Positions 14,656 through 57,394 of a DNA stretch of 64,000 bases are shown piece by piece; position 1 is the stretch's first letter; each line of letters begins with the position of its first letter. The stretch spans positions 6,273,466 to 6,337,465 of the forward strand of contig BFEA01000012.1 in NCBI GenBank assembly GCA_003427395.1, written 5' to 3'. The position numbers were made by a program, and so were the translations under genes. The notes beneath the pieces were generated by a model. The model made no database searches. It was not told the origin of the DNA and saw nothing but the letters and a program-made list of their open reading frames with translations. This DNA comes from Chara braunii. Taxonomy: Eukaryota > Plantae > Charophyceae.

Positions 14656-15797
14656 GTCCTTCGGGACATCCGTTAAAATTGGAACGATACAGAGAAGTTT
14701 TTTTTTTTTTTTTTTTAACAAACCATTCATTTATTATTATCAAAACAATCGGAGAGAGGCCGGGGACCTCACATTTCAACCCGGAGTTATCTCGGCAGCA
14801 TCAGCCGATTTAGCTTATCATTACTCCACTGATTCTTCCAAAACCCAGTCCTTCTCAAATCCACAGCAGAACACGACCGCTACAGCTCCTGTCCTCTGAG
14901 AAGGTCTTTTCCCACTAACTTCCTGACTTCAATCAGACGCACGATTAGCTCACTTGCCTGTCCTACTTCTCCCCTACCTACCTGCTACTCTCACCCTACT
15001 ACCTGGCTGTTTCGGGAAGGCCTAACCCGGCCTGGTACCGGCCCACAGCGGTCGGTTGGAACTGACTCAGTTCCTGGTAACCGTGACACTCTACCACCCC
15101 CGACCCCAGTGTGACCTCCCGCGGTCCAGACCAGGAGCCGGCCCCAAACCGAGTGTCCTGGTTCGGGAAATACGACCCACCTACTCTTACCTACTCTCTA
15201 GCCTTCTACTGGCATCTGGGGTCGGGTGGGCCCCTCTGTCTTCCAGACACCAGGTTGGCTCCTAATAAACGACTGTGTCGTAATTGTCCCCGTGCTCTAA
15301 CCACCTGCTGATGACCAAGCTCCCGTCCATGGAGATTGAGGCCAGCCGATCGCTGAGCGCCCAGGTGTTTCGGAACCAGGCAATCCCTTCTCGTCGCTTT
15401 TCCTGATCCGCCTTTCTAGTCCAGTCCGCCCAAATGGACTTGACCATCAACGATCTGAACAGTGCTTCCGCCTGTCTCTCGGGTAGCCCTTCCCCTTTAA
15501 ACCTCAATCCGTTTCTGTCCAGCCAGATGACCCATAGCATCGCTGCCCTGCCGACTTGTGCCACGTAACCCCACCCTTCACAGCTACTTTGGGTCTGAGG
15601 GAGACCTCCAAGTAGAACCCACCTCTGATCCGTCAGCGAATTATCACCCGTTATCCACCGCCAGTATCTCTCCCACCAACCCCACCACTCCTTGGATTTC
15701 GGGCATTCCCACCAAAGGTGGCTCATAGTCTCCTGCGCCGCCTGGCATCTGTCACGTGTGGAGTTGACACGCATAAATCGAGAACTGGTCCAGATTT
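14656..15797 (+). pseudogene. U6 retrocopy split into a 5' part (14656-14697) and a 3' part (15765-15797) by an antisense LINE fragment; 24 nt of U6 missing
   Basis: gtccttcgggacatccgttaaaattggaacgatacagagaag|T19 ... |tgacacgcataaatcgagaactggtccagattt, then an A-rich tail; tggaaacg at 14647 and 15829. Confidence 0.92.
14698..15764 (-). mobile_element. 5'-truncated L1/Tx1-type LINE: ORF2 C-terminus (zf-RVT), 3' UTR and poly(A)
   Basis: Stop-free ORF 15262-15774 with RCQAAQETMSHLWWECP...W and LWVIWLDRN motifs; poly(T) on the plus strand at 14698-14716. Confidence 0.88.
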
Positions 15798-28568: not shown

Positions 28569-29105
28569 GTGCGACATGGAAGTCGTAAAACTAGACCTAT
28601 TCTACCTAAAGTAATGTCACGCGGTTGTTAAGCTGCGCGATTCAGAGCCTAAGTAGGCTAAAAAGGGGTCGTCGTGACGAGGATGGACCACGGCGTGAAG
28701 GAACGATTTTAAGGTCCACGGGACGTGCGTCGAGGACCTGGGGCGAAGGCGTCGGGGCCAGTTAGGTAGGGTAGCCGTTGGGGCTGTCGGCTGCCGACCC
28801 CGCCTGCCAGCCACGGCAGCAAGCCGGCTTAGCATGCTCAGCCTGCTAAGCGCTGGGAAGGGGCCTATTGGGCGTTGGAAGCCCTTCATAGAGAAGGGCT
28901 GCTCCTTTTTTATTGTGAAAAGGAGCTAGCCCAGTAGGTACCGTCGCAAGATTACCACCCCGCAGGCATGGGGATCGAACCTGACTAACTGCACTACCGG
29001 GCTAGCTCCTTTTGGAGCAGCCTACGACTAGACAAGGGGTGCGACCGACTTTCGGCCGTGCGATCTTCGAGATCGCGTGGCTGAAATCAGCCGCGCCAGG
29101 GTGAA
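28569..29105 (+). other. Hairpin-dense segment starting GTGCGAC; possible 5' portion of an organellar group II intron (NUMT/NUPT)
   Basis: GTGCGACATGGAAGTCGT fits the GUGYG start with a first hairpin; many short stem-loops follow; no domain V/VI is visible. Confidence 0.35.
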
Positions 29106-29158
29106 ATGGCCTCTGCGCAAGGATGACACGCAAAAATCGAGAAATGTTCAATTTTTTT
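29106..29158 (+). pseudogene. U6 3'-half copy
   Basis: atggcctctgcgcaaggatgacacgcaaaaatcgagaaatgttcaattttttt, followed by A-rich sequence. Confidence 0.88.
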
Positions 29159-29772
29159 GTTTTTGGAAAAAAAAAATACAAACAAACAAACAAAGAGAAG
29201 AAAAAGGAGAGATGCAGGGAAGCGAGATTGAATTGCTCCCCCGCATCTCTGCTTAAAATACATCCAAATGCAGGAAGTTGACCCTGCCCTTTCGCTAGAG
29301 GGAATCGGCTAGTAGGTCGTGGCTATGCCACGACGTGACAGGACCGTTGGCATAAGCCAACGGAAAAAAAAAAAAAAAAAAANNNNNNNNNNNNNNNNNN
29401 NNNNNNNNNNNNNNNNNNNNNNNNNNNNNNNNNNNNNNNNNNNNNNNNNNNNNNNNNNNNNNNNNNNNNNNNNNNNNNNNNNNNNNNNNNNNNNNNNNNN
29501 NNNNNNNNNNNNNNNNNNNNNNNNNNNNNNNNNNNNNNNNNNNNNNNNNNNNNNNNNNNNNNNNNNNNNNNNNNNNNNNNNNNNNNNNNNNNNNNNNNNN
29601 NNNNNNNNNNNNNNNNNNNNNNNNNNNNNNNNNNNNNNNNNNNNNNNNNNNNNNNNNNNNNNNTTTTGTTTTTTTCGTTTTTAGATTTGCGTTAGATTTT
29701 TTTCTTCTTTCCTTTTTTTCTCTCTCGTGGTACCCGTTCGTTTCAAACGAACGAGCAGATAGGACTGCGCCT

Positions 29773-29825
29773 AACTGTTTCGTCGGACTTCCACCGACTC
29801 ATCAGGAGGCTGAGCCTCGACAGTT
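29773..29825 (-). ncRNA. Type III hammerhead ribozyme with intact core (HHR-1)
   Basis: Minus strand AACUG-UC|GAGGC-UCA-GCCUC-CUGAUGA-GUCGG-UGGAAGU-CCGAC-GAAA-CAGUU: all three stems Watson-Crick paired, GUC cleavage triplet, predicted cut between 29819 and 29818. Confidence 0.93.
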
Positions 29826-29913
29826 GGCCGGCCAACTGTATCAGCCGCATAAACGCGGCTATGTGCGGGCCGAATCCTCTCTCTGGGAGAGAGAGAGGGA
29901 AACGTGACTGTGC

Positions 29914-29970
29914 CAGACTATTTCGTCGGACCTTCACCGACTCATTAGGGGGTTGAACCCCTACAGTCTG
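29914..29970 (-). ncRNA. Second type III hammerhead (HHR-2) with a G5A core substitution; probably inactive in this copy
   Basis: Minus strand CAGACUG-UA|GGGGU-UCA-ACCCC-CUAAUGA-GUCGG-UGAAGGU-CCGAC-GAAA-UAGUCUG; GUA triplet, predicted cut between 29962 and 29961. Confidence 0.88.
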
Positions 29971-30007
29971 CTCGTGGGCAGCGAATGTGCCGCCTTAGGC
30001 GGCCAGG

Positions 30008-30083
<76 letters not shown>

Positions 30084-30187
30084 CCAGCTTACCTGCGCCC
30101 GTTGGATTGTGAAAAGGGCTGCAGTGTTAGCAGGCGCGCCCGAACTTGGCGCTGAGAGCGTCCGGGTGCGGGCGCGGGGCAAAGGGA

Positions 30188-30246
30188 GGAAAAAAGACCC
30201 TGTTTAGCTTGACTCTAGTTCGACTATGTGAGATGACTTGGGGAGG
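30188..30246 (+). rRNA. Short degenerate nuclear 25S/28S rRNA fragment; non-functional
   Basis: ggaaaaaagaccctgtttagcttgactctagttcgactatgtgagatgacttg versus conserved LSU GGAAAGAAGACCCTGTTGAGCTTGACTCTAGTCCGACTTTGTGAAATGACTTG. Confidence 0.88.
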
Positions 30247-32189
30247 GGACGTGCTCGTTCGTTTGCAAACGACAAGCTGCCCCTGCCGTAGAAAAATAAA
30301 AAAACAAAAACGAAAAGAAAAAAAAAGGGAGGGTAGAAGTTGGGAAAAGAAAAGGAAACGGCCGCGGATTTAGCCGCGGCCTCAGTCCAGATGCAAGTTT
30401 AGAAGCATCTGGACTATGGATAGACAGCAGACTGTTGCTGTTTCAACAGTCTGCTTGAAAATGGCTGAGTACGACCATTTCTGGGCTGCGTCTGGCCGCG
30501 GGTGAAGGCCAGATGCATTACCAAGGTTCAGAACTTGGTTCCCCTAGGGGAACATCAAGTTCCCTGGCCCCTGATCGTGATTTTGATCAAGGGCCAGACT
30601 CTATTTCGGGATTTGGCTGAGGGCAAAGCAGCTGCCCTCAGCATTCAGCCAGCTATAAAAGCTAGCCTGCCATCCAGCAGCCTCACACTTGTGGCAATGC
30701 TGCTGGGGCATTCTACTTGAGTAGATGCTGGCTGGCTGGCTGCTGGAGTGATGAGGCGAAGTGCTGGAGGTCTGCAGCGAGAGGGGAAAGGAGAGGCTGC
30801 CATAGCCACTCTTTCAGTTGGGGAGGTGCAGGGAAGGTGCTGCCTGCACGACGCTGTGGCGGCAACTGCTTTTGGTGAAGTGCACGGAAGGTGCTGCCTA
30901 TCCGGCACGACTGCGGTAGCTGTTTTTGCATTGGTGCAGGGGAAACTCTGGCCGTTTTGCACAGCGGCGGCAGTGTTTTGTTGGCATACTGCGGAAGCGT
31001 TGCCGAATTTTTGTGACGGCAACAGTGATTTTAGTGGCGATGGTGCGGAAGCGCTGCCGAAATTTTGTGGCGGTGGCATTGATTTTCACAGCGGTGGCGG
31101 CAGAGACATTTTGATGTGAACTGTTGGTAATATTATTGGCACAGTGGCGTGGTACCGGTTTTGACGGCGCGGTGAGCAGTAATTCCACCATCATTTTTTT
31201 GTAGTGTGCGGCAGTCATAGTGGGTCCCAGTGTGACCTGGAGGTTGGACTGACGCTGGTGCGTGGTTGGGATTGCGCGATAGTGCTGTGGCGGTAACGTG
31301 AGACCATCTGGGACCATTTTGGGACCAAGTGGGACTGATTTTAAGATCAAAACGGACGTATTGGGGTGGCTATTGTGAGCGTATGTGGTACTTGGAGACG
31401 GCGCGGACTTGCAATTGGTTGTGAGTATCCTTGGTAAAGGAAGTACAGTTGGGACTGTTGGGACCACATGGGACTCATTGTTGGGAACACCCTCTTGGAG
31501 GGTTATCTCACTTGAGTCTTTCAGTGGAGGTGGCTTCAAGCTCCGCTCATACGAGCACTTGGAGGGTGAGGTGGCCGTCGTTAAGTGGGACGACCACGAG
31601 TTGTGGAGTTGTGAGCTGCATATTTCCAGCTGCAACGGCGATCATTTTCTCAACTTTGACTGGAATACTACTCGGCTTTTTTAAGTGAGCCGGATCAAAC
31701 TTCACTCAAGGTCAGTTGAATGACTCAGATTTCCCGTCACACCTGTGTGAACCCGCATTTTGCTTGACCTTGTCATTTGAATGTTCGAAAGAAAAGGTAG
31801 AGGGAAAGTTGTGCGAGTCATGCATGTGAATGAGAAAGTCTGACTTGAGTATGGGATTGTGCTGTTTTCTTTGGAACTTGTGTTCCTTACTTGTTGTGCA
31901 GGTAGGTAGAAGGATGTTTGTCATGGAGATTGACATTGCCTATTTGGGATGGAGAAAAAAAATTGTCATGTTTCTATCTTCCACCTGCCTGCATGACAAA
32001 AGTAGTGGAATTATGAAATGAGTGAGTTCAGCGGGTGTCATGAAATAGAACTTGTGAATAAAGTGAAAATACAGTCAATTGGACTTAGCATTTTCCCAGG
32101 ATTGACACATTTTATCCGCAATGACCTTCTATATCTGTACATGTTAAAGTGATTCTCATTCTCTATCTCATTCAACTTCTTTACGTCTG

Positions 32190-52621: not shown

Positions 52622-54529
52622 TTATACACAATCGAAGTACTTGGGATTGCTTGGAAAGTCGTACTCGACTCTCAGACGCTCGTTTCCGAGATCTGAGCCT
52701 CTCTGAGGGAAAATGACACGCAGATCTCCGTATATGTAGAACTTTCTAGAGCCCTTCTCACTACTACTCCTACTTACCACACCTTGAACAGAGTTCACTC
52801 GAGGGCTCCGTCCACTGGTGTTCGCTGGTTCGACAGATCTATTGTCCAGCACCCAGTCAGGAACGCCACATTTCCTGCCTACGACTCTCCCAGGATAATT
52901 GTCCACCCCATCTTCTGTTTGCTCTACGCCTGCACTCTTTGCTGTGTCAGGTTCCAGCCCCTCAAATTGCAGCTCACCAGTGGAGACCCCTTCTGAGTAG
53001 GCTGCCTCAAAATCCCTGCTGCTGTCAAAACCCTTGCACTCATCACGATTCCTTGCTGATGAGCGAGTGTGTGAGCAGATGAAGCGCACATGCATAGCAT
53101 ATCGCAATGAGCCAGCGATCCCACCACTGCTGCTTCCAGAAGCGTTGGAGAGTGCACCCACATTCTTAGTTGCATGTTGTTCAGTCTGTTGCCTGATTGG
53201 CCCGCCTACTGCTATGTGCACCTTGTTCTCAGAGGAGACAGCAAAGACCTTCTGTCTAAGGAACGTTTTCGTTCCTGCTGGCATGTCCGACAAATCATAG
53301 TCACAAACAAAGGTGTGGATTGGAGTCCTCTCTGGATTGTTGAGTACCAGCTGGATTCGACCCTTCACTGGTACACGATAACGACTGTTGCTATTACAGC
53401 TACCGCTGGAAGACCTCTCAAGCTTTCTCTCACAAAGGCCCTGTATTTCCAAACTTCTACTGACCACAGTGCCTCTATCGTCCGTGGTCGGCATGCATAG
53501 GCAGGACAGGGAAGACTGTGGTTGGGGCATTGGTATCGGAGAACTTGCCTTTGCAATGGGGCTGCTGCTGCCAAACTGGAGGCGACAAGGAGAAAGGGAT
53601 GTAGGCGACGAGGAAGGCCGTGCATACCCATGTGCTGATGACGGCGGTGACTGCACAGTTGCTGAGATCTCCGACAAAAATGGGCGATACATGTCACGCG
53701 ATGAACATTGACCTGGTGGTGAGCCAGAACGGGGCCAATGGCCCTGCAGCGACGTGGACGTGGAAGGTGATGCCGGCACCGTCGTTGACAGTGGAGTGGT
53801 TGGAGGAGCCTCCAAGCTAATGCATGCGCTATACAGGAACGGTCCGTCGTTGAGACAGCTGACTGCAAACGGAAGCTTTCGATGGGTGGGCGAACGACCA
53901 CCGCCAACCACACTGAGCAATGCCAAAAACCCTCCCAATCTCTTCAGCGGACTAGCAGTAGATATACGCCCTGAGAGCAGGCATTCCTCATACGACCCCA
54001 CGAGGGGCTTCCTCTTCTGCAGCAGGACAGCTCCTGGCCAACCACCCCTCCCACCATCCCTTGCGACATTTCCTGTGGAGTCGATGAACTCGTGCTCCCC
54101 ATGCCAGCCAAATACTGCAGGGGGGGACGATGGGAGACCAGGAAGCAATGGCGAGGAGAGCTGACCAGAGTACTTGAGCGAGTGCTTACTTGTTCCCAAA
54201 GACCTCCCCCTATCCGAGAGGCCGCAAGCTCTGCACACCTCCGATTCGTTTCTCAGAGCATCAGACACATCACCCGGCAGGCTCTTCCTAACAGGGATGG
54301 AGATGGGGAGACCTTTCCCCTCTTTGTTGAAGGAAGACCGCCTCGCAAGAAGCCAGGAAGACGTGCCAGTAACCTTGAGGGCAGAGACAGACCCATCAGA
54401 GGCCTGAGTAATGCAACGTGGGCCAAACTCGTGGGCCCCACCATGCAATAAAGAGGGGGAGACAAGAACGACATCGCTCGTCTCCAAGTCATCGGCGACA
54501 TCCTCATCAAGTCTCAAACCCAGTCCCAT
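52622..54529 (-). CDS. FAM214/Atos-like protein (DUF4210 + Chromosome_seg domains), 635 aa, single coding exon
   Basis: [13 protein letters not shown]...GFLALLSV (DUF4210) and [44 protein letters not shown]...LRYAMH...[14 protein letters not shown]...FPSNPKYF. Likely start is MGL at 54529, directly after an acceptor-like ttttgtctgcag. Confidence 0.9.
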
Positions 54530-57394
54530 GCTGCAGACAAAACCGCCAAAGATCGTATTTGTGCAATGTCCTGCGTCCCACTGGGATAAGCACAGGAACC
54601 ATCCATCAATACCCACAAACAAACTCCACCCGCTTACCAGGGAAAGCAACAACAGAGGGATTACAGAAACAGCTAGACATGGCCATCTACAAAGACAAAG
54701 AGATATCCTGCCTGGAAATTATATTTGCACGATGTTATGTCTCCCGCTGGGATAATCACAGGAACATAAAGTAGTACCCCCCCTCTCCCCCCAGGTACTC
54801 CATCCTTTTCACCAGGAAGAGCACAACAGAAGACGCAGGTTACAAACACGCCTGGGTATGAGACACTCACACAGACAGAGATATCCTGCCTGAAGCACAG
54901 AGATTGTGAGGCACCCCTGGCCTCCTGAACCTGGCAAAACCACTGTCCTGCCTGTGCAAAGCCAAAGTCTAATCACTGCAATCAGATCAACCCTAGGGAA
55001 CCGGAAGACCACACCAAAACAGATGCCCTCTGTTCATTGATGAAGGTTTCATAGAAAACGACATTGCATATCCGGTCCAACATCGTTTGAATTGTTTGCT
55101 AGCAAAAGCTCCGGAAACCACGAGGCCCTAACCAGTGTTGCCACGAGCGGGGCGAGAAGATATCCTGAAAGAATGACATCTATCCGTCTCTGCCGGAAAG
55201 GCAGAGGCGCAAAGATGATAGGAACATGTACCAATGACCGCAGCACTGCTATGAGAAGACATGGCAGTGAGCATGGTCAGGCGTGCCATAACACGAAGAT
55301 TCACCTGAGGAGGTTACACATGCACACAAAAAGTTGAAAGAGACGGAAGAGAGAGAACAAAACTCACACGAGGGACACAATGGTGCCAACAAGATAATTG
55401 ACAGAAGATGAGAGGAATGATAGAGTCTACAGTTCACTTGATTGGTAGAGAACATATCAGGGAACTCATTAGAAAGAAGAGGGCAACAGAACGTGAAGAG
55501 GGAAGCAGAGGAGGAAGAGAATTGCCAACGGAAGGGAGGACAACAATGAAGCAGGAAGTTCATTGAAAGGAAAAGGATAAGAACTGAAGCATATAAAATC
55601 AAACAGAGATACGATGGAATAGAGGAAGACGGTGCGTAAAAACTGAACAGGCATGGACACCAGACGGTAACAGAGAGGGATAAGAAGATGGCACCAGGAC
55701 AGGAAGGAAGGAAAAAATGAAGCAGAACCGCCATGAATGATAGAACCTGAAGATGGTGGAATAAAAAACACGAAGACAGCAGCGATAACAATATTGCAGA
55801 CGGACAAAACAAAACTAAAATACACTCACACCGAGTCACACAAGGATTACGGAGCTCAACAGGAGGATCACATTGCGAGAAAACGAGGATAGCATGGCAA
55901 CACCGGGGAAGTAATTGAACAGCGTACCGAGACGGATTGAGAAAAAAGACGCCAATGGAAAAGGAACAGAGTGCTGTGGACGAGGACGGCCACGGTGAGA
56001 GAAAACGAGTTTCGCAGGAGGGCAACAATGAGACAGAATAACGACAAGACAAGAAGAATGTGCAACGACAAAAAGACAGAGAAGTCGTGCGAGACGTGGG
56101 CAAGTCAACAAGAAAACAGAGAGGTGGCAATGGCGCAGAATTACTACAACGGCAGATGAACGCAATCATACATTGTGAAGAAGACAGGGATTCAGCTTAT
56201 GGCATCTACGGAAGAGCAGAAGAAGCGTTGGAAGGAGAGGTGGTGATAGCCCAAAAAGGCGGCTATACAACAGCAACAGAATGGGAAACATGAGATGGAA
56301 GAGGAGGAAACACATGGAAGAGTAACGGTGAAAATGAACAACATTGCAGCAGACATCCATGGAGGAGTGACAAAAGGAGATACAGCGACAAGACAGCATG
56401 ACAAGCCAACCATGCAACATGAAGGCAGTGAATGAAACACAGGAAGACAAAGATGGAGCGGGAAGAAGGAGATGTAACAGCGGCATAGTCGAGCGTGAGG
56501 AAAACAATGAAGGAGAAATTAGCAACGAGCAAGAGATGACAGCAGCAAAGCAGGAGGGTGGTGGCAGCACAGGCAGACAAGAACAGAACAGGAAGATAAT
56601 CTAAAAGACAGACAGCAATGGAACCTGGGGGTGGTTGACGCAGAAAACAACAGAACATTAAAACGACCGAACAGGAACAGAGTGGAACAAGGTGGCAAAT
56701 GAAAAATGGAGAGGGACGGAAGAGCTAGTTAATCCGCATTCTCAAAGCAGACGAATTAAACAATAATAATGGTCAGTAATCTTAGCATGCCGCCTGAATG
56801 GACACCAGCAACACGATGCACCTGATCATCGATACCCGGCGGCACAAAATGCAGCAACAAACCACCAACGTGCACATGGCGGTTCATGCGTGGGGTACAT
56901 TTTGGGGAGCTTAGTTGCTGCGGCGGTGGACTTTCTGTGCAAGCAAACAGTGTGGCATATACAGAGAATGTGGCCTGAGTTCCATATGCGCTTGTCACAC
57001 AGACCCAAGAACGAATGGACTGACGAAGGACTTCTGAGACCTGGAAAGAATTAAGAGGTGGATAAAGGAATTTGCTCTATATATAGACTGGTATCCCAGC
57101 ACCAGCAGACTGGTATCTCAGTATAATTGAAATAGGCCCTCACAATGTCCTGTGATCAGTTAAATGAACCTGTCATGATCCTACCTCATTCATAACGCAG
57201 AAGTCAACTTTGAGATGATGCAAGACTTGCTGAACTGAAGAAGAAGTGAAAAGAGACAGAGCAGAATAGAATGGAGAAGAAGATTAGAAGAAGAAGAAGA
57301 AGAACCACGGTTCAATCTACAATTGATTCTGTAAGTTTTTTCACCCGGAAATTGAGGCCCTGTCCAGTCATCCAGTTTTGTTCTGTTCAGTAGC

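Follow-up and report, generated by a model that had tools for sequence, protein, structure and literature searches.

The locus examined here, on the minus strand of a 64,000-nucleotide stretch of the genome of Chara braunii (the whole of which is called the window below), carries two hammerhead ribozymes in close succession. It raises the question of whether these ribozymes delimit a small RNA that is cut out at both ends and circularised, or whether they are the remains of an element that spreads by another route. The former had been proposed in an earlier note on this DNA, which predicted the excision of a 143-nt RNA. Read along the minus strand, the region comprises a (CT)36 microsatellite, a leader, the hammerhead HHR-2, the short segment GGCACAGUC, a spacer, the hammerhead HHR-1, the short segment GGCGCAGUC, a hairpin (CUCGUUCGUUUGAAACGAACG), the motif GAGAGAG, and an A-rich tract that ends in an assembly gap. 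A second copy of the hairpin and the A-rich tail lies nearby in the inverse orientation. The individual features are located as follows.

30252–30326, plus strand: second, inverted hairpin and A-rich tail (score 39, vs 21 ± 4 in shuffled sequences)
30011–30083, minus strand: (CT)36 microsatellite, period 2, 36.5 copies, directly upstream of the module
29970–30010, minus strand: leader upstream of HHR-2, 41 nt, with a GCCGC..GCGGC hairpin
29915–29969, minus strand: HHR-2, decayed type III hammerhead (Rfam RF00008, 40.0 bits)
29906–29914, minus strand: 9-nt counterpart GGCACAGUC after HHR-2, from direct-repeat comparison
29827–29905, minus strand: spacer, 79 nt, made of hairpins
29772–29826, minus strand: HHR-1, type III hammerhead (Rfam RF00008, 55.1 bits)
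29763–29771, minus strand: 9-nt extension GGCGCAGUC after HHR-1, from direct-repeat comparison
29664–29762, minus strand: tail after HHR-1, consisting of hairpin CUCGUUCGUUUGAAACGAACG, then GAGAGAG, then A-rich sequence up to the assembly gap
29383–29663: assembly gap of 281 N, starting 109 nt downstream of HHR-1 and concealing the sequence past the A-rich tail

Both ribozymes align end to end with the Rfam model Hammerhead_3 (RF00008), which is the sole member of its clan to match either of them. The score of HHR-1 (55.1 bits, E 1.9e-9) is above the gathering score of 48.5, and that of HHR-2 (40.0 bits) is below it, with E-values of 1.1e-6 in a 2-kb scan and 3.4e-5 over the whole window. With the E-value limit relaxed to 0.5, the Rfam scan still gave no hammerhead other than these two in the whole 64 kb. 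The minimum-free-energy fold of each is a three-way junction, in which stems I and II are capped by loops and stem III is open. In HHR-1 every core base is present and the cleavage triplet is GUC, with the predicted cut falling after C29819; in HHR-2, the corresponding cut would fall after A29962. The interval between the predicted cuts (29961 to 29819) is 143 nt long and folds into hairpins with an energy of -59.4 kcal/mol (z -4.25). The letters of loop 1 (UCA) could pair with those at which loop 2 begins (UGG or UGA), which is a statement about sequence only. These observations bear out what had been claimed earlier for the architecture of the locus, namely tandem, co-oriented type III hammerheads on the minus strand, cleavage sites 143 nt apart, an interval built of hairpins and, at the level of sequence, complementarity between loops 1 and 2.

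The two ribozymes differ considerably in their state of preservation. The core of HHR-2 reads CUAAUGAG, corresponding to the substitution G5A (29946), and its GAAAU segment contains C15.2U (29920), which yields a G.U pair. Both substitutions had been recognised in the earlier note and both do lie at CAG sites; a third one, C17A (29962), by which the cleavage triplet has become GUA instead of GUC, was absent from it. The relatives of HHR-2, taken as reads and contigs from the same organism with at least 85% likeness to the stretch, have G at 29946 and, in most cases, C at 29920 and C at 29962. Since the relatives hold G, C, and C at these three positions, all three changes appear to be derived in this copy. 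A hammerhead tolerates a GUA triplet, as well as a G.U pair at 15.2–16.2. In turn, G5 is essential, and its replacement reduces cleavage by orders of magnitude, as is established by mutagenesis. HHR-2 thus looks like a dead, derived copy, i.e. a relic. Because release of the 143-nt product requires both ribozymes to cut, and HHR-2 is devoid of the essential G5, double cleavage at this locus is unlikely. HHR-1 still looks able to cut, and a transcript of the locus would be cut once, at C29819, with no release of a 143-nt RNA.

The hammerhead core is not private to this module, as it belongs to a very abundant, transcribed genomic family. The summed word depth in DNA contigs (run X1), which conveys an order of magnitude only and is explicitly not a copy number, is about 0.9 million for the HHR-1 core and about 14,000 for HHR-2, 218–358 for the leader of HHR-2, 44–206 for the spacer (a few-fold single-copy depth), and about 10–12 for the unique flank (about 12 at 29664–29675). 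The RNA data consist of one RNA contig set and two oligo-dT raw-read runs (6–12% of each run). In the two oligo-dT runs, the depth over the HHR-1 core is about 1,100 + 625 and 2,480 + 1,340, and thousands of reads match the hammerhead cores, to which the RNA coverage of the locus is confined. All of these reads fit in part and then enter unlike sequence, and for this reason they are assigned to other copies. Over the spacer the depth is zero in each of the three RNA sets, and none of them contains a back-join specific to this unit; both absences are weak evidence, since poly(A)-selected libraries lose small circles. Reads do not preferentially start or end at the cleavage sites, although in poly(A)-selected, partly fitting reads this is uninformative on cleavage. 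The one back-join that does occur in RNA, from 29929 to 29792 (4 reads), also exists in a DNA contig, where 8 additional letters are present, and therefore reflects a genomic tandem elsewhere.

The surroundings of the ribozyme in other members of the family show which parts of the module recur. In most of the related RNA reads the ribozyme continues into UGUCACAGCCCCUCGUUUGUUGUCCUCUUC (agreement 0.91–0.93), which is like the sequence after both HHR-1 and HHR-2; a CUCGUUUGUUG tail, similar to that of HHR-1, stands after the hammerhead in most of these reads. DNA contigs from other loci include monomer forms, in which the hairpin, or GAGAG/A-rich sequence, follows immediately upon the hammerhead, and one contig joins an HHR-2-like end directly to the tail hairpin (joint 29750 to 29909). 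In another contig, the leader of HHR-2 lies beside an HHR-1-like ribozyme, and the 5' part of this leader recurs beside a hammerhead in other genomic copies as well (joints 29820/29823 to 29983). A few further genomic copies, identified in DNA contigs, span the spacer together with HHR-2. Tandem hammerheads are also present at other loci, with spacings of ~60–190 nt (for example, 51 + 9 nt). In contigs of a DNA run and of a probable RNA run, hammerheads are arranged head to tail only 9 nt apart, and this tandem unit of ~60 nt is close to the smallest conceivable one that consists of a hammerhead only.

Similar motifs outside Chara were sought by scanning JGI metagenome contigs for the pattern of the core and stem II. 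None of the 11 loci found is like the Chara flanks, and these loci were rejected as copies of the family, being unrelated hammerheads that merely share stem II; two of the 11 are type III according to Rfam. Type III hammerheads with scores of 53.6 bits are located at L007:8190-8244 (minus strand) and L011:3440-3494 (plus strand) in the metagenome contigs Ga0114902 and Ga0114903. In stem II and loop 2 (GUCGGUGAAACUCCGAC) they match the Chara family majority exactly, and the sequences around them are unrelated and resemble those of prokaryotes or phages.

The part that the two units have in common is short. The direct repeat consists of the hammerhead and the following 9 nt (GGCRCAGUC), 62–64 nt altogether, with 81% identity over 62 nt and a period of 143 nt. 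Homology between the units stops after the 9-nt extension, and other copies diverge at 29763 and 29905. The flanks and leaders outside the 62–64 nt repeat are no more alike in local alignment than shuffled sequences (p 0.2–0.97); by the same comparison, the leaders were rejected both as degenerate hammerheads and as homologues of each other. Because the units are not significantly alike beyond the repeat, the boundaries of the two copies are uncertain. The shared GGCRCAGUC, which ends at GUC, might represent the 3' end of an RNA cut by the following unit. The evidence for such an end is mixed, as some copies diverge at this point, whereas the majority tail continues past it.

Inside the spacer, a (CT)n/(AG)n palindrome is present at 29877–29900, so that, along one strand, the microsatellite changes from CT to AG between the units, and the spacer palindrome CAGUUGGCCGGCCAACUG shares sequence with the 5' strand of HHR-1 stem III. 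The vicinity of the module is free of transposon ORFs, including any for a reverse transcriptase, no reverse transcriptase ORF is found anywhere in the 64-kb window, and Pfam scans of the neighbouring ORFs revealed no transposon domains. A protein collection searched with the antisense frame through HHR-1, for ORFs over family copies, gave no candidate. The module has no LTR, its direct repeat being only 62 nt long, and the window has no tRNA-Met primer-binding site at up to 1 mismatch. Upstream of the module, in the sense of the minus strand, there are two pairs of 54-nt tandem repeats (30818–30925 and 30976–31083, 72–76% identity), which sit within long ORF-like stretches without a Pfam match. 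An exon-like ORF (52625–54652, minus strand) corresponds to an Atos-like / DUF4210 / Chromosome_seg protein and is 100% identical to the NCBI protein CBR_g8659 of C. braunii, by which the source of the DNA is confirmed as this species.

We consider that the locus consists of two decaying copies of a short, non-LTR hammerhead mini-retroelement of Chara braunii, probably dependent on Penelope-like elements, and place the probability of this reading at roughly 0.6. The probable link to Penelope-like elements is drawn from the architecture of the module and from the literature. In the course of events that we infer, in its order as well as in the cutting by the ribozyme and the reliance on a reverse transcriptase of Penelope-like type, the element would be transcribed, often within a longer RNA, and the hammerhead would cut just upstream of its own body, creating the 5' end of an RNA composed of the ribozyme, a short tail hairpin, and an A- or AG-rich end. 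A reverse transcriptase supplied in trans would then copy this RNA into microsatellite DNA, its most likely source being one of the microsatellite-targeting Penelope-like (Chlamys-type) elements of C. braunii, some of which carry hammerheads. Repeated or partial-tandem insertions would yield co-oriented ribozymes at short, variable spacing. The (CT)36 microsatellite is the likely insertion target. Simple successive insertion would be insufficient, because of the switch from CT to AG between the units. The abutting (CT)36, the co-oriented units, and the inverted copy of the tail are compatible with Penelope-like elements, although not specific to them.

Several other sequences in the window resemble copies of RNAs. 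The inverted copy of the tail is preceded not by a hammerhead but by a fragment like large-subunit rRNA (30183–30246, plus strand), in which ~65 nt, AAGACCCUGUUnAGCUUGACUCUAGU, match the eukaryotic model at positions ~2396–2460 (E 0.045). On the other side of the assembly gap, a hairpin (CCGTTGGCATAAGCCAACGG) followed by A19 runs into the gap (29330–29382, plus strand) and looks like the 3' end of another, plus-strand retrocopy. Close to it, also across the gap from the hammerheads and on the opposite strand, is a U6-like sequence (29060–29158, plus strand) with a score of 42 bits, which narrowly misses the gathering score (44). Over its 3' two-thirds it is good U6 ending in a T-run, and its 5' part is swapped for two unrelated hairpins. 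Two full-length copies of U6 (77.6 and 73.2 bits), two weaker or partial ones, and a 5' fragment of U2 are located within ~8 kb of one another, forming the following group.

6467–6571 (minus strand), 8685–8789 (plus), 7301–7408 (plus), 14656–14700 (plus), and 7427–7514 (plus): cluster of snRNA copies or retrocopies

Such sequences could suggest that the module itself is a chimera of retrocopied RNAs, formed when a LINE-type reverse transcriptase switched templates between an abundant hammerhead RNA and an unrelated hairpin with an A-rich 3' end. This origin would agree with the several full and partial copies of U6 and U2 in the window, with the A-rich nature of the tail, and with the inverted hairpin and A-rich tail placed behind a piece of large-subunit rRNA, another abundant RNA; the latter combination may be a template-switch chimera. 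For the module, however, we regard it as unlikely. In the dominant group of related RNA reads, the hammerhead is followed by a tail with the related motif CUCGUUUGUUG (agreement 0.91–0.93), and an HHR-2-like end is joined to the hairpin in the contig with the 29750 to 29909 joint, on account of which the tail seems to belong to the hammerhead element as a rule. In addition, the microsatellite adjoining the module fits the targeting known for Penelope-like elements (PMC8557442).

Another origin, local tandem duplication of one hammerhead segment after a single insertion, followed by neutral decay, would account directly for the 62-nt direct repeat with its 81% identity and 143-nt period. Stem II is the same in both ribozymes, which differ at 13 of their 55 positions, and 10 of these 13 differences are transitions, as might be expected of such decay. 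Nine of the 13, however, affect paired positions, and yet all 17 pairs of HHR-2 are standard, as are 33 of the 34 pair cells over both hammerheads. Three pairs of stems I and III are altered on both sides, with A-U replaced by G-C twice and C-G by U-A once. In a simulation, 13 random substitutions spared all pairs in only 0.02–1.5% of the trials (P 0.0002–0.015), depending on the transition bias. The differences are thus a matter of covariation and not of plain duplication, as had been noticed previously. Since three compensatory pairs are improbable under neutral drift, HHR-1 and HHR-2 both descend from ribozyme lineages in which selection maintained the fold, and this is what copies of an active family should show. 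A G.U wobble intermediate is the classical path of compensatory change, and in the family majority G.U wobbles are found at the pairs of stem I that covary between HHR-1 and HHR-2. The family majority also differs from HHR-1 at 29788 and 29791, its loop 2 being UGAAACU, and its stem III resembles that of HHR-2. At 29814 and 29817 the states of HHR-2 are those of the family majority, which points to a different lineage of the family, or to gene conversion. With the flanks of the repeats being unlike as well, local duplication is quite improbable.

Finally, a working retrozyme- or viroid-like module, with both hammerheads cutting and the 143-nt RNA circularised as an intermediate of transposition or replication, would suit the co-oriented ribozymes 143 nt apart, the well-folded interval between them (z -4.25), the descent of both from functional ribozymes suggested by their covariation, the few further genomic copies that span the spacer and HHR-2, and the tandem hammerheads of other spacings elsewhere in the genome, but it is very unlikely in view of the G5A substitution in HHR-2, its sub-threshold Rfam score, and the G5 kept by its relatives, to which the zero spacer depth and the lack of a unit back-join in three RNA sets add weakly, as poly(A) selection loses small circles, and the proposed excision of the 143-nt RNA is not supported.

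Two decaying copies of a mini-retroelement, as preferred here, can be compared with three known systems. The closest of these in terms of organism are the Chlamys-type Penelope-like elements of C. braunii, which reach very high copy number (Craig et al. 2021, PMC8557442). Two Chlamys subclades, including families of C. braunii, carry canonical hammerheads, with a 3' hammerhead in Chlamys-2_cBra, and Chlamys-type elements prefer microsatellite targets and form partial tandems and inverted truncated copies (PMC8557442). The module resembles Chlamys-2_cBra and the PLE-X-like elements of C. braunii in the possession of a canonical hammerhead in non-coding terminal sequence of the same organism, and it shares with the Penelope-like elements of this alga their very high copy number, association with microsatellites, and partial tandem or inverted truncated copies. 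This likeness is one of architecture and published description. Unlike these elements, the module has no reverse transcriptase, endonuclease, or gag-like ORF within reach. Penelope-like elements use type I hammerheads. At least in the accessible part of its text, PMC8557442 describes no stand-alone units of ~100–150 nt and gives no hammerhead type.

The second system comprises the metazoan non-LTR retrozymes, tandem repeats of 170–400 nt with type I hammerheads and circular RNAs, for which a preprint (10.64898/2026.07.22.740005) argues a derivation from Penelope-like elements as their non-autonomous forms. The module is similar to them in being non-coding, devoid of LTRs and of its own reverse transcriptase, and in having co-oriented tandem hammerheads at short spacing; a dependence on Penelope-like elements is likely to be common to both. 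It differs from them in that its hammerheads are of type III rather than type I, and in that only the ribozyme and 9 nt are repeated, whereas in the metazoan retrozymes the repeat comprises the unit as a whole. At 143 nt, the spacing also falls short of their 170–400 nt.

The third system, the plant retrozymes, has type III hammerheads within LTRs of 300–400 bp, together with a polypurine tract and a primer-binding site, and its insertions are flanked by target-site duplications of 4 bp (PMC4918200). Their unit is 600–1000 nt long, with a core of 300–600 bp between the LTRs (Cervera et al. 2016, PMC4918200). The module is like them a non-autonomous, non-coding element of the green lineage with type III hammerheads, which, standing in tandem, could in principle mark the two ends of an RNA unit. 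In contrast to them, its repeats are of 62 nt and not of 300–400 nt, it has neither a tRNA-Met primer-binding site nor a polypurine tract, its interval is of 143 nt vs 600–1000 nt, and it is inserted beside a microsatellite. Since the module ends in the microsatellite and in the assembly gap, no target-site duplication can be read. The earlier note was thus right to set the locus apart from the plant LTR retrozymes.

Taken together, these comparisons suggest that the module would work in the manner of a non-LTR retrozyme or of a Penelope-like element's terminal region. The description of it as an undescribed non-LTR type III element holds as regards the type III hammerheads and the lack of LTRs, as attested for the latter by the 62-nt repeats and the absence of a primer-binding site. 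The word "undescribed", in turn, is too strong, because hammerheads in the Chlamys elements of C. braunii, the targeting of microsatellites, and tandem and inverted insertions have been published (PMC8557442). In the searchable literature, the hammerheads of Chara are mentioned only briefly, within Penelope-like elements.

We can speculate that intact relatives of the dimer, or the short tandem arrays with spacings of ~60–190 nt, yield very small circular RNAs with type III hammerheads, and that they constitute a non-LTR, microsatellite-targeting lineage of retrozymes of which this locus would be a decayed member; this extension is a tentative one. If true, the lineage would link the hammerheads of Penelope-like elements to viroid-like RNAs and to the retrozymes of plants, and its monomers would be below the size of those of any described retrozyme. 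The single locus described here is a relic and matters little alone, and it is the family that matters more. Chara braunii seems to contain a very large number of copies of type III hammerheads, carried by tiny, LTR-less, transcribed elements associated with microsatellites. Such a combination of the ribozyme type of plants with the Penelope-like mode of spread of animals, in a streptophyte alga, would bear on the origin of the plant retrozymes, and perhaps also on that of the viroid-like hammerhead RNAs.
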